Source: Ascidiella aspersa (Eukaryota). From it: 64,000 nt of DNA. Numbering within the stretch: the stretch's first letter is position 1; each line of letters begins with the position of its first letter. Both the position numbers and the translations under genes were made by a program. The DNA lies in contig OZ004609.1 in assembly GCA_963924565.1 (NCBI GenBank), forward strand, positions 17,608,001 to 17,672,000, in the 5' to 3' direction. Below, one piece after another: positions 6,801-12,800 of the stretch. The notes below the pieces were generated by a model. The model made no database searches and was not told where the DNA came from. It was given only the letters and a program-made list of their open reading frames with translations.

Positions 6801-9800
6801 GGCGCTTGCACGGTGTTTGGGACGTGGAGCAACTGGAGGGGGAGAAGACGGACTCACACTACGCTCATCCACCTGATTCTCTGGTATATTGAAAGGCTGG
6901 GGCTTTTTCACTGCATCGGCAGCACCTTTGGAAGCCTGACGACTGCGCCTTCTGCGACGTGGTTCTGGTTTGTTATCTTCCTCGTTGGTTGGAGAAGCTT
7001 GTCTCAAAGGTATTCCACTCAGTTCTCTATAACTGAGAGGCTGTCTGGCCAGGTCAGCCATTGCACCACTACCAAGCTCAACCTTTTTCTCAGATATCTG
7101 TTTATGAACAAAGGAAAAGGTTTGAAATTAACTGACAATTTTGTAACCACATATAATATACAGTTATTTACCTCTGTAAAATCAACGTCGGAAGTTTGCG
7201 AGTATGATCTAGGCGATACTTCGCTTCCAGTTTCAGAGCTGTCCACCTGTGTTTTTTGTTTGTTTTTTAAAGTAAACAGTGCTTCTTTTATAAAGCGTAA
7301 CTTAGGTAATATTTCAAAATGTTGACCAGGTTGACATTAACCAATGTCTGTCAACAGTCAGCAAAGTGTTGTTTCACTTTACTATCCTTCCAAATTTTAT
7401 TTGAATAATTAGAGCGCTTAAAAAAATATAAACTTTTTTGTGTGAAAATAACATGGTGCATTTCTAGATCGGCTAAATCCATACAAAGACTCATTAAGGT
7501 GGTTAATTTTATTAACCATTTGCAACTTACATTCGACCTTCCCTTGTATGAACTTGGGACATCTGCAAATTCTTTGTAGCTAGTTGGTTTGGACGAAACA
7601 GGAGGAGCTGACTTTGGAGCTGGAAGTGGACTTATTCGATCCTCCGATTGCTCATCAAATGAGACCGATTTCTTTGGAATAAACATAATAATTTAAAGTA
7701 CTAGATCAAAATTAGGAAACATCCTATTACAGGAAAATCTACCAACAAACAACTGAAGAATTATAATAAAAAATAGAAACGCCATTTATGAATCTTAGAA
7801 CACTTACAAATCCATTTTGGAAAGGTTCATCTAGTTGTGGCTCATCATTCTCTTGAAGGAATCTCTCTTGTTCTTCCTTCTTTGCAATTTCCTCCTTCTC
7901 CCAGGCTTCCTGTTCCTTCATCATCTGTGACTCCTGACAAAAGTTAAACTTTTATGCCTTTATACAATTTTTTTTGAAAAATTGTGATTGCTTGGTAGCT
8001 AATGATGGCAATGGAGGTTTGATATTATTTTTTGTAACCATACTTCTGTGTTGTAAACTTAACAGTTTGGTATAACGTATTTATAAGTAACTACTTGTTA
8101 AATATCTTACTTGGTTAAAGCTAATTTAACATCCTACAGACTGGAGTGTATGTTAATCACAGTCACAAAAATAACAAAAGCATTTAGACTAGTATTTACA
8201 ACTTTTATTTTATTGAAAAGTAAGTTTAAACTGTAGTTTGTTAGAATGCTAAAAACTGAAAACCCTTTCAGCTTAGTACCACTGTCACAACAAACTCCCA
8301 TTTTACAGGAAATATACATGCGAACAACTAATTCAAACATATCACAGAAAAAAAGTTAGTTGTGAGATGTTGCCTGGAAACAAATATTAACAACAAAAAG
8401 GCTTATCAACAAATGGCATGGTATATATGAACAATAATCACAATGCTACATACAGGCATATTCTAATTCCAATGTGTCCATAATTTAATTTACATTATAC
8501 GTCTACCATCAGTAGAAAAAACATTAAATAGGGCATGCAAGTCCTATTAATGTAGTATCAGATATAAATTAACTAGAAATCCTAATTGTTTCTATCATGG
8601 CAGACTTGTCAATTAATACCACTATTTGTTAAAATAAAACCAATATAATATATAAACTTTGATGTATTATGCTTACATTTCCTGCAACTAAGAGACACAA
8701 AGTCATATTTCAGCCATGGTATTAAAAAATAAAGGCTAGCAAAATAAAAATAAAATTTGAAGTTGATATGTATTAGTAAAACTATAAATATTATTTGTAA
8801 AGCACATTTCAAAATGCAAAGCAAATATCTTGTCAATTTGCTATAAATAAAGAATTCCTTCATAATCTAGTCAAGCCCTATTAACAGATTAATAAACAAC
8901 ACAGGAGATGCAATCATGCACTGACATGCAACTTGGCAACAAACATGCAACCGGGAACTGGATTCATACTTGCTGCAGCCTTGATATATCCTCAGGTGAC
9001 AAATCTTGGTCGATAGATGACGAGCTATCGGATAGGGCAGTCAAAAGTGGATTGGCAAATGTGCCAGCCGATTCCTGATTAAAGCCCCATGCAATAAATT
9101 TACGCAATTGATTAATTACATAAACCAGTGCAATGCAATAAATGTATGCAAAATTGCCAATCTTTGGTGTTTTTGATAGCTTGCAATTCAATTGTGTTTA
9201 AAGCAGTGGGTGTGATAAATCATGTTCAATATGAGACTATGTATGCACAGTAATTACACAAACTAAGAATTAGAATCATAAGCAATTAATGACCACAAAT
9301 TTAGGAATCACTGTGCTTACATAAACATATCTACTTAAAATTGCGAAGAATTATTTTGTAAAGCATTGATGGTGGTTAAATGTGTCAATGTCAGCCATTC
9401 ACATCACATACACAAATACCATATTAATGATTCACAATAACTCATCAGACTAATTACCTCAGTCAATTTTGAACCATTGTTATCCATAGTATCATAAATA
9501 TTGGATTCCTGAGGTTGTTCCTCCACATGCACAACTACCCTGCTATCAACTGAAGTTACTACCTCTGCAGTATCATTATTACTAGACTCAACAGCGGTGT
9601 CATCAGTTGGAGGCAAATGCACATCAGAGCGTATTCCGGTTGTGGGAGCATCTGCTTTGGTTATTGCAAAAGTGATTGTGTCACTCTCTTTCACCTCATC
9701 CGTTTTTAGCTTAGAGGAAACTTTCTTTCCATCAATTTCCGCATGGGCAGACATTACAGCATTAACACATTCCGATGCAAGATCGCCAGTTTCTGGTGTA

Positions 9801-12800
9801 GTGTCAAATGTGGAACTATCTAAGTTGTCATTGTCTTCTATGTCAATTCCCACTATTTCAGGTTGCTCCTGATCAGCAGGGACATTCTCCTGTGTTATTT
9901 CAATCCGCTTCTTTGGACTTTCAGAGTCCATCGAGACCTCTACATCACTTGGAGATGTAATAACAATTTTAGGATGATTCATTGAGCCATTGTTTTCCTC
10001 CTCAACTGTGACCCCATTCTTTCCTTTATGTTTGGATTCCCTTTTGCTTTTCCTAAATGGATTTCGTTTGCGGAAAGATCTTCTTAAGCTTTGGCCAAAG
10101 CTTGTAGGAGGGGCATCATCTGAACTCTGCGTAGGTTTTACTGACTTCTTATTTAATTTATTTTTTTCTTGGCTTAGTTCTAGCGATTCAGCCTCAGACA
10201 ACTCTTCCTTTGACTTGTCAGTTTTCGATGGCTGGTACTTACGAGAGAATGTATTTCCCATTGTTGCTGATAGCAGGCAAACCCAAAACACTTATTCAAC
10301 TTTTAAACCAGTTGGACAAGGCTAACTTACACAACCATCATATATCTTATCGCTACACAATAGCAGAACATGTAAAAATTTAAATAGCAGAATATGCAAA
10401 AAAATTGAATAGCAGAACATGTAAATGTAATTAGCTAGATATTATTTTTAGTATGGTAGCAATAAACACCAAAAAAATGTTTATCTTATCTTTAGTAACA
10501 CAACTAACCTCTTTCACTATATCTATATAAATATCTATTTTCATAACTAAAATAATACACAAACACTCACAAACCAAAACCTAAACAGTCAAGATACAAA
10601 TTATAATCGTCGCCACTTCTACTATTGTTCTGCTAAATGCGCAACGAGATTGCTAAGAGAGTGTTGGGTGTTAAGTGCAATGGAAAGAAGTTGGCCTCTG
10701 GTTAACTAAAGACTAGCGTTTACACAGGCAGAGGGTGGCCTTGATCTCCAGGTCACAGCTGCGTGGTGTTGATTTATCTGTTCAGTGTTTGACAAGCGCC
10801 AGACCAGGTTATGGAGTAAAGCTGTTTGCTTGTCGCGAGAAATTCAATTAACTTTTTACTTTTCTGTCACAAGTCACGTGTCGCGTGGTTTAATGGCGGA
10901 GCTATACTGCCTTTAGAAACTTACAATAAGGGGAAAACGCTCTCTAGAAATACGTACATCAAGCCATGACAATCGACTACGCTATATATTGACACAATCC
11001 TTTTTTTTATTTCTCTTTTGCAAAATGTCGTAAATTGCATCAACCCTAAAACAAAACAACGAATTTATAATTACCCTTTCCCAAACATTATAATAAAGTT
11101 TAAATTAATTGACAGGCATTCATCCACAAATTATTATATCAAGGCATGACTTCGCTCGCACTTAAACTAACATTTTAAGTGCGATGTGCGACACAATGGG
11201 TTTTTACCATAGGCCTAAAAAGGCTCCGTCTTGTTGCTTATATTACAAAAAACCATCCGTAAAGTTTGAAGTAAAACTACAACGTCATTAAAGCATTGAT
11301 AGGACAATATTAAAAGCTTCTATCAGATAAAGGCATATCACCCAACATACGCCTGTAAGCAAAATAACGCGGTAATGACTGTACAAGAGCATAACTGGTG
11401 GTAACGAGCGGCTTAGCATTTTAAAACTATTTGACGGCATTTGTCGCGTTCTTCGAGCCGTGAAAAAAACGAAGCCCGATTCACGGAGAATCGCGTTCTA
11501 GCGTAATTGTAAGAGCGTGACAAGCCGAGTGTGACCATTGAGGGAAATCGCACACCACAAGTGCTCTGTTGCTCCTAATGTTGTTGCCAAAGGCTTCGGC
11601 TATTCGAAACCAATACCCAACAAAAAGATTGTCGTGCGCGACTTTACGGCGGCAGCACATAGGGCTTGTTTATTTTCTTCTTTATAAAAAGAAAAAATCG
11701 ATTAAGCATCGATAAGATGCAATATAAACAATAAGTTGCAAAGTCAAAAACATATTGACACGTTCTGCGAAAACCACACTAACATTATGACATTTCGTCG
11801 TTATTGCTTATAAAACGTGGTTTGTAACAGATGGCGACATAACTGCTGAATAGGCTTTTTAAGCTGTCCCTTTTGACGAAACTTTCTAAAAACAAGTGTG
11901 TGAACTGCTGCAACAACATTGACGAAGCCTTAAATCACATAAAAGATACAATTTACGGCGTAAACAATGCTTAACGGAATGGACAACAGGAGTAAAATAT
12001 GAAAGCCAATAAAACAAGCTTTTATGGTGCGCGCAACTTCTAATAATGTCCGTACAGTATTAGTCGGATACGGGTTAAATTTTTTTAACTTCAGCAAAAC
12101 ATATAGAAACATGTTACTATTTTTAAATCCCTTTGCAAACATTGCTAATGGTTTACATTTTATAGCAATGTTTTTTTAAGGGTGAATACAATGTTCGAAA
12201 TGGAATAAAGTTGTTCGAAAACAAACATTAAATACGACCTAAACTTTTACATATAAGCAAACGAATATAAAAATTAATATGCTTTCAACATAGATTCGAA
12301 AAATAGGTCAAACGGCACACTTACGAAATTAGCTGCACATCAATACTAATCTGTAGTCTAAAGGAATTGTAGCCCGATAAAAATAATCCAGGGCATACAT
12401 ATAAATGCTGCCAAACAACTCAAAATACAAAACGGACATTCTATACAATGTTGAACGAAGCCAATCGATGAATTTCTTTTTAAGATCGCTGTGAACGGTG
12501 ACACCTATATGACGCGGTCAAGGATCCTACTCCTTGGGTAATAAAAAATTAGTCATACACGGGCAGAATATTTTGGCAAGTAATCGATATAATTCCTTAA
12601 TGATAAAGATAAAATAGAAAGAAAAATTCGTACGCTTAAACTTCAGATATTAGGCAGCACTTTACGGTAAACCAACACGCTAAAGCCGAGTAAGCTCTCT
12701 TTGCAGCAAAAGTTACAAAAGTCATGTTTGTCCAATAAGGAGTTGCATTCTACAACGATTAATCAACAATTTTTCCATCATCTTAAAGTCGGTATTCTAC

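Follow-up and report, generated by a model that had tools for sequence, protein, structure and literature searches.

A conserved coding exon in an intron of the Ascidiella aspersa Scribble gene, probable start of a lineage-restricted, tail-only Scribble isoform

Does a Scribble gene encode, beside its full-length product, a second protein that carries the tail alone? This question is raised by a 64,000-nt stretch of DNA from Ascidiella aspersa (assembly GCA_963924565.1, contig OZ004609.1, positions 17,608,001 to 17,672,000; hereafter the window), the minus strand of which carries a Scribble-type gene. Within the intron of about 12.06 kb that separates the exon for the fourth PDZ domain (PDZ4) from the first tail exon (T1) there is an open frame of 804 nt and 268 codons (9458..10261, minus strand), referred to here as the MGN exon. 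The original prediction, made from the letters of the window, had read it as the hidden N-terminus of a myristoylated, MARCKS-like protein that is spliced onto the Scribble tail. Judged by its sequence, its single-copy status and its conservation, the 804-nt frame is a genuine conserved coding exon. We consider it probable that an internal promoter drives its transcription, that it serves as an alternative first coding exon spliced to T1, and that its product is a tail-only Scribble proteoform restricted to one lineage.

When the window was re-read, the start codon, the frame, the phase of the donor, the acceptor-like site and the position of the next exon (9074) were all found as originally described. 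The exon opens with an ATG at 10261 in a favourable context (ACAATGG, with A at -3 and G at +4) and ends at the donor GAG/gtaatt, its last base being 9458, in phase 0. The ATG is preceded, at a distance of 5 nt, by an acceptor-like ctatcag (AG at 10268-10267). Read past its donor, the open frame extends over 10291-9404, a total of 295 codons. Given the stop-codon probability of 0.067 per codon in the 12-kb intron, the probability of 295 open codons is approximately 1.5e-9, which corresponds to an expectation of about 2e-4 when all six frames of the whole window are counted; elsewhere in the intron no open frame is longer than 133 codons, the next being 108. The MGN exon is present as a single copy in the 308.6-Mb genome.

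Conservation was assessed against large protein collections. When 1.84 billion representative proteins were scanned in full with HMMER, P0001 was the sole match (E 5e-24, 40% identity), and a word-indexed search of 5.8 billion proteins gave P0001 again and nothing more; longer spliced isoforms were possibly hidden by the length window of the second search or by the 50% clustering of the first. P0001 to P0004 are prokaryote-style open reading frame (ORF) calls on metagenome contigs, and the four contigs of this relative, L001 to L004, represent two near-identical versions of one locus (99.9% over 17.7 kb). The exon of the relative measures 978 nt, a multiple of three, and comprises 326 codons that end at CAG/gtacgt, also in phase 0. 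It is 58 codons longer than the MGN exon, and beyond the conserved parts the two can be aligned only with many gaps. Similarity at the DNA level starts exactly at the ATG and the DNA upstream of it does not align; in-frame stops are encountered 10 codons upstream of the ATG in the window and 21 codons upstream in the relative. Past the donor, the frames read on for 17 codons in the window and for 8 in the relative, and these read-through tails are unrelated, as expected for intron sequence.

The residues that are invariant between the window and the relative include M1, G2, N3, F5, S6 and K8, one run of 11 residues and most of a 39-residue stretch. A block of 10 residues is among the parts that are kept, and a second conserved block covers residues 82-120 (NGxxVEEExNG.., at 9902..10018). 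By the Nei-Gojobori method, synonymous sites were saturated (proportion of differences, pS, 0.88-0.90), and the corresponding nonsynonymous value (pN) was 0.31 over residues 1-125, rising to 0.53 in the remainder of the exon, which is acidic, of low complexity and poorly conserved (9458..9901). Saturated synonymous sites combined with a low pN imply that the two species are far apart and that the first 120 residues of the protein are clearly constrained. The original prediction was to fall if relatives did not conserve MGxxxS and the basic segment that follows it; in the only known relative both are kept (MGNRFS; net charge +10).

The order of the exons is also shared in part. In the relative, a homologue of T1 lies 2.9 kb downstream of the MGN exon on the same strand, with 70% amino-acid identity, and the acceptor (aatcag) and donor (CAA/gtatga) of T1 are identical in both species. 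T2, T3, PDZ4 and the later tail exons were not found in the 17-19 kb loci of the relative, where T1 was the only one present, so that the synteny rests on one exon. A possible internal duplication linking T1 to MGN residues 85-120 was considered separately and set aside as unreliable, having been significant in one of four cross-comparisons (0 of 2000 shuffles; 271-1772 of 2000 in the others).

Read data from four runs, X1 to X4, were examined over 7501-13500. The flat depth and long colinear contigs of X2 and X3 are DNA-like. The kind of X1 is not on record; since spliced contigs of the Scribble gene were found in it, this run holds cDNA. X4 is a true RNA run, sampled to about 6%, with 49 reads over the region, all of them oriented as expected of minus-strand RNA. 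One X1 contig, at a depth of 41.4, joins 9073 to 9457 (9074/9458 at cut plus one) and skips 383 nt that are bounded by CT..AC on the plus strand, which defines a GT..AG intron between the MGN exon and T1 (9075..9457). The joint uses exactly the predicted sites; its shorter side is 26 letters long. Two flanking X1 contigs (9457-11091 and 8969-9076) stop 1-2 nt beyond the exon borders, as occurs in a de Bruijn graph at a splice branch, and because such branches bound a contig on both sides, a short side is expected of the junction contig. The 9458-to-9074 junction that had been proposed was therefore recovered at its exact sites in one X1 contig, and no read across it was listed in the thinly sampled X4. 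Two X4 reads over 9465 contribute 86 nt to the bin 9301-9500, the equivalent of two reads stopping at 9458, which is a hint only. Further along, the joint between T2 and T3 (7808/7671) was covered by 16 X4 reads and by one spliced X1 contig that is missing from X2 and X3. The X1 depths do not balance (41.4 and 33.3 lead into T1 at 55.6), and no isoform ratios were drawn from them.

Downstream of the joint, T1 (8970..9074, 35 codons, starting directly after aatcag), T2 (7808..7933, 42 codons) and T3 (7531..7671, 47 codons), all on the minus strand, are open and in phase 0-0, and the frame of the MGN exon accordingly continues into the tail without a break. Motif matching of the tail, on the same strand, revealed the two elements that characterise Scribble tails, SADH motifs and a WRAAR box. 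One SADH motif is perfect (YRQFAAVP, 4727..4750) and two are near matches (YKEFADVP within T3, 7578-7555, and YRELSGIP, 7031-7008); a WRAAR-box-like segment ending in KRKQWRQAR lies at 686..748. The latter is close to the start of the window, and the gene may run off its edge. T1 probably resembles the segment of human SCRIB directly after PDZ4, and it would then be a shared exon; likewise, T1, the segment LSFR(D/E)R(R/Q)KYFE and that with the WRAAR box would follow one another as in human SCRIB. The SADH consensus, Y-[KR]-x-[FL]-A-A-[ILV]-P, was defined as a spectrin-binding motif in vertebrate SCRIB and was called vertebrate-specific by the defining paper (PMC4350421), a claim with which the perfect motif and the two near matches in this invertebrate tail are in conflict. 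The WRAAR box is described as a SHROOM-binding motif that every metazoan SCRIB is reported to possess (PMC10626209).

The coverage of T1 was below that of T2 and T3 in both cDNA sources (55.6 against 88.6 in X1; about three reads against a depth of 7-10 in X4), and for this reason T1 may itself be an alternative exon, perhaps one used mostly with the MGN exon. Within T1, at 9039, three of three X4 RNA reads differ from the assembly (A to G), a change that appears in no contig of X1 to X3; it could be a strain difference or editing, three reads being too few to decide. The changes at 9465 and 7921 occur in contigs of the DNA runs as well and are ordinary polymorphisms.

The identity of the host gene was established exon by exon, each exon being searched singly. 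On the minus strand, the first coding exon of full-length Scribble lies at 45545..45591 (ATG at 45591) and encodes Cys8 and Cys14, the two cysteines that had been reported for it. It is followed by leucine-rich repeat (LRR) exons (approximately 45128-40695) and then by four PDZ regions (Pfam PDZ matches), PDZ1-3 having been identified from ORF translations only. This order, N-terminal LRRs and then four PDZ domains, is that of the LAP family. The exon for the second half of PDZ4 (21136..21359) ends at CAAGAG/gtaggt in phase 0, and its best matches in the PDB were SCRIB PDZ3-4 (4wyt, E 3e-24) and scribble PDZ4 (1uju). Since PDZ4 best matches SCRIB and the tail carries both SADH and WRAAR motifs, the sequence identifies the host gene as Scribble and the tail as a Scribble tail.

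The N-terminus encoded by the MGN exon carries two conserved features. Its first residues, MGNTFSRK (10238..10261), follow the N-myristoylation pattern G-{EDRKHPFYW}-x-x-[STAGCN]-{P} (PROSITE PS00008-type), both in the window (MGNTFSR) and in the relative (MGNRFSN). The strong start context, the in-frame stops upstream and the conservation that begins at the ATG are compatible with Met-Gly as the translational N-terminus. The second feature is a polybasic segment rich in Phe and Ser (residues 54-81, at 10019..10102) with a net charge of +11, three Phe and five Ser; its counterpart in the relative has a net charge of +10, three Phe and six Ser, and all but three positions of its 18-residue core are identical. 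Both the MGxxxS pattern and this patch are thus present as predicted. As to control by PKC or Ca-calmodulin, which was proposed originally and may apply, the sequence shows only S-x-[RK] and R-R-S sites. The 187 residues of the exon outside the basic segment have a net charge of -28. A single-sequence AlphaFold2 model had a mean predicted local distance difference test score of 42.5 and almost no secondary structure, and the 268-residue region is accordingly predicted to be disordered.

The description of this N-terminus as MARCKS-like stands as an analogy of composition and layout, and not as membership of a sequence family. The composition of a MARCKS-type effector segment, basic with interspersed Phe and Ser, was found, the resemblance being compositional only. 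Homology to the MARCKS family (Pfam PF02063) was not detected: no Pfam family, MARCKS included, matched the MGN exon, its first 125 residues or the exon of the relative at E<=0.1 or at E<=10, no PDB sequence matched at E<=10, and an ESM Atlas search gave no relevant match. Like MARCKS and MARCKS-related protein, the MGN-encoded region has an N-terminal Met-Gly consensus and a separate basic Phe/Ser segment and is otherwise acidic and predicted to be disordered. Unlike MARCKS, it has its patch at residues 54-81 rather than at about 150-175, and the module is joined by splicing to a Scribble tail. The layout is that of a myristoyl-electrostatic switch, and it is a reasonable hypothesis that this N-terminus works in the manner of MARCKS.

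Taken with the joints to T1 and from T2 to T3 and with the tail motifs, the conserved exon suggests the following sequence of events. Transcription would start from an internal promoter in the 12-kb intron after PDZ4, and the 5' leader would probably be short and unspliced. The phase-0 donor at 9458 would be spliced to T1 at 9074, and we infer from the matching exon phases (0-0) that the message runs on through the whole series of tail exons. The product would have no LRR, LAPSD or PDZ domain; it would consist of a disordered N-terminus of 268 residues and a tail with SADH (spectrin) and WRAAR (SHROOM) motifs. The N-terminus would present the conserved N-myristoylation consensus and, some 50 residues later, the conserved +11 Phe/Ser basic patch. 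Attachment to membranes by myristate and electrostatics is the likely mechanism, and may be reversible through phosphorylation of the patch serines.

Several results weigh against this proposal. The conservation is a single pairwise comparison, one relative being known. The 9458-to-9074 joint rests on one short contig, with a side of 26 letters, from a run of unrecorded kind, and X1 also contains an unspliced contig over 9047-9486 at a depth of 33.3, compared with 41.4 for the joint. The MGN exon received about five X4 reads in the sample of about 6%, which does not exceed the background of the intron (about one read in 200 nt), and none of the 49 reads listed crosses 9458/9074. The joints between T1 and T2 and between PDZ4 and T1 were not seen in any run, which at the sampled depth is uninformative; for T1-T2 this follows from the thin depth and from a single-nucleotide polymorphism (SNP) at 7921 that shortens the junction contig. 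No start of transcription was located, and comparison of window and relative by blastn and shared k-mers and for TATA, E-box and TCTCGCGA elements yielded neither a promoter motif nor anything conserved upstream of the ATG. With a start further than 80 nt upstream, the ATG would come after three short ORFs. Finally, the N-terminus has no similarity to any known myristoyl-switch family.

The alternative that survives best, although we regard it as unlikely, is a small gene of its own within the Scribble intron, in which case the MGN exon would never reach the tail proper. Its product would be either an unspliced protein of 285 amino acids (stop at 9404-9406) or the translation of a two-exon RNA that ends just after T1 (about 304 amino acids). 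The unspliced X1 contig over 9047-9486, at 33.3 against 41.4 for the joint, is what the first form would yield, and the second is suggested by the T1 donor, CAA/gtatga, past which a Val codon is followed immediately by TGA in both species. The unseen T1-T2 joint and the lower coverage of T1 than of T2 and T3 in X1 and X4 also fit such a gene. Against the unspliced form, the codons that follow the MGN donor (17 in the window, 8 in the relative) show no relationship between the species. Against the two-exon form, T1 is phase 0-0 and has kept both its acceptor and its donor in both species; if T1 is indeed an exon shared with human SCRIB, its donor would be in regular use. The absence of a T1-T2 joint is moreover expected, given the SNP at 7921 and the three or so X4 reads (in the sample of about 6%) that fall on T1. 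We retain as the more probable the reading in which the MGN exon begins a Scribble tail isoform.

How the 5' end of that isoform is formed was addressed through the region upstream of the ATG (10262..11091, minus strand), which contains the acceptor-like site and, at 10509, a candidate donor. The original prediction had considered an internal promoter with a non-coding leader exon ending at 10509, spliced into 10266, or else spliced-leader trans-splicing into the same site, and we now give a leader of either type, with the same protein, only a small chance. In its favour are the quality of the ctatcag 5 nt before the ATG, the GAG/gttagt at 10509, and the fact that removal of 10267-10508 would eliminate three upstream ATGs. 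However, one X1 contig is colinear with the genome over 9457-11091, unbroken at both 10266 and 10509 and yet broken at the donor that is used, 9458. No joint or loose end at 10266 was reported in any run, no spliced leader was seen in the read data, and one X4 read pair in 10301-10700 is colinear. Furthermore, the position and phase of the acceptor are not conserved in the relative. The depth of the X1 contig, 40, falls about threefold beyond 11092, to 12-13. An internal transcription start near the ATG, with neither a leader intron nor trans-splicing, fits better, because the contig is unbroken to 11091, no joint is reported at 10266 and the depth steps down at about 11092. Rare variants can be lost from contigs, which is why a leader of either type is kept as a minor rival.

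Some further features of this upstream region were recorded. Upstream ATGs are absent from the last 80 nt before the ATG in the window and from about 165 nt in the relative. Shortly before the MGN exon, at 10340-10430 on the minus strand, acatgttctgctatt is repeated directly in two to three copies, and every copy brings a short upstream ATG. A locally GC-richer patch at 10840-10890 (minus strand) has one TCTCGCGA at -579 from the ATG and one CACGTG E-box at -619; neither is shared with the relative, and the pair is an unsupported promoter lead only.

An internal cassette exon of full-length Scribble is improbable; on this reading MGN would not be an N-terminus, and an upstream exon or donor phase that has escaped recognition would supply the frame. 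A phase-1 donor would suit the acceptor-like site at 10266, whereas all candidate PDZ4 donors are phase 0; entry at 10266 from the PDZ4 exon is out of frame and reaches a stop after 27 codons, which bears out the earlier view that this is not an ordinary cassette after PDZ4. In-frame stops lie 10 and 21 codons upstream in the two species, conservation begins at the ATG with an invariant MGNxFS, and the entry phase that would be required differs between the species, as judged from the AG sites just before the ATG of the relative. A chance open frame or a decayed, functionless remnant, for which X4 coverage no higher than the intron background and the lack of a family assignment might speak, is scarcely credible given the probability of about 1.5e-9, the frames of 268 and 326 codons that have stayed open in a pair of species with saturated synonymous sites and near-identical blocks, the spliced X1 contig, and the 40% identity that excludes same-lineage contamination of the relative's contigs.

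The original prediction knew of no such Scribble isoform, and the literature searched yielded neither a tail-only nor a myristoylated form, a comparison that did not extend to FlyBase's 18 Drosophila scribble transcripts (PMC10626209). What would be new is a tail-only Scribble with its own anchor; the principle, namely short isoforms from internal promoters and exchanged anchors, is already known. Dystrophin Dp71 and nesprin-1-alpha2 are short C-terminal isoforms produced from internal promoters of large scaffold genes (PMC13305302, PMC4924313). As in these proteins, a unique intronic first exon would join the 3' exons, with loss of N-terminal targeting and retention of C-terminal interaction motifs; of the Dp71-type connection between a unique and a shared exon, the joint to T1, the putative shared exon, was seen here in one X1 contig. 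The MGN unique exon differs from theirs in being long (268 codons) and in having its own putative lipid anchor.

A parallel for the exchange of anchors is provided by PSD-95 and SAP97, the N-termini of which are palmitoylated in the alpha form and carry an L27 domain in the beta form. NADH-cytochrome b5 reductase has myristoylated and non-myristoylated forms that arise from alternative promoters (PMC2289487). In all of these, as proposed here, alternative 5' exons swap the membrane-anchoring N-terminus, whereas the swap in Scribble would drop the whole LRR-PDZ body too. With full-length SCRIB the new form would share the locus, the tail, the SADH-type motifs and the WRAAR-type box; the former is targeted by its LRRs and by palmitoylation of N-terminal Cys residues, to which Cys8 and Cys14 correspond here, and the new form would have neither. 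Adducin and dematin, both membrane-skeleton linkers, combine a spectrin-binding element with a basic, MARCKS-related segment that binds membranes and calmodulin under the control of phosphorylation, and so offer a functional analogy only, their sequences being unrelated and their domain order opposite. DMTN carries an SADH motif (PMC4350421).

Elsewhere in the window, the intron between the LRR exons and PDZ1 contains a 3.2-kb minisatellite (30760-33983) in which a 24-nt unit is repeated 134 times (92% matches); on either strand it produces long but spurious ORFs in several frames. Units of 21 nt make up another array at 36715-36920. On the plus strand, an exon at 52063-52341 encodes a CCHC zinc knuckle (Pfam zf-CCHC, E 6e-8) and an RS-like region; it is part of a neighbouring SRSF7-like gene on the strand opposite to Scribble.

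Scribble has a central place among polarity scaffolds and acts as a tumour suppressor; what its tail contributes, through the binding of spectrin and SHROOM, is only now emerging. The broadest form of the proposal, to which we hold only tentatively, is that in at least one invertebrate lineage Scribble has a second abundant proteoform, in which a cytoskeleton-binding tail without LRR or PDZ domains is placed under a lineage-specific myristoyl and polybasic membrane switch. The reach of the finding is limited, the MGN exon being known in two species, from a non-model organism, the evidence for its splicing being moderate and the functional steps all being inferred. If the proposal is true, Scribble would join dystrophin, the nesprins and the Dlg family among the scaffolds that swap targeting modules by means of internal promoters. 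The locus would represent a natural separation-of-function experiment, in which the tail is held at the membrane without the LRR and PDZ domains. The actomyosin and spectrin output of Scribble would then be uncoupled from the input of the polarity complex, and the short form might compete with full-length Scribble for its partners.

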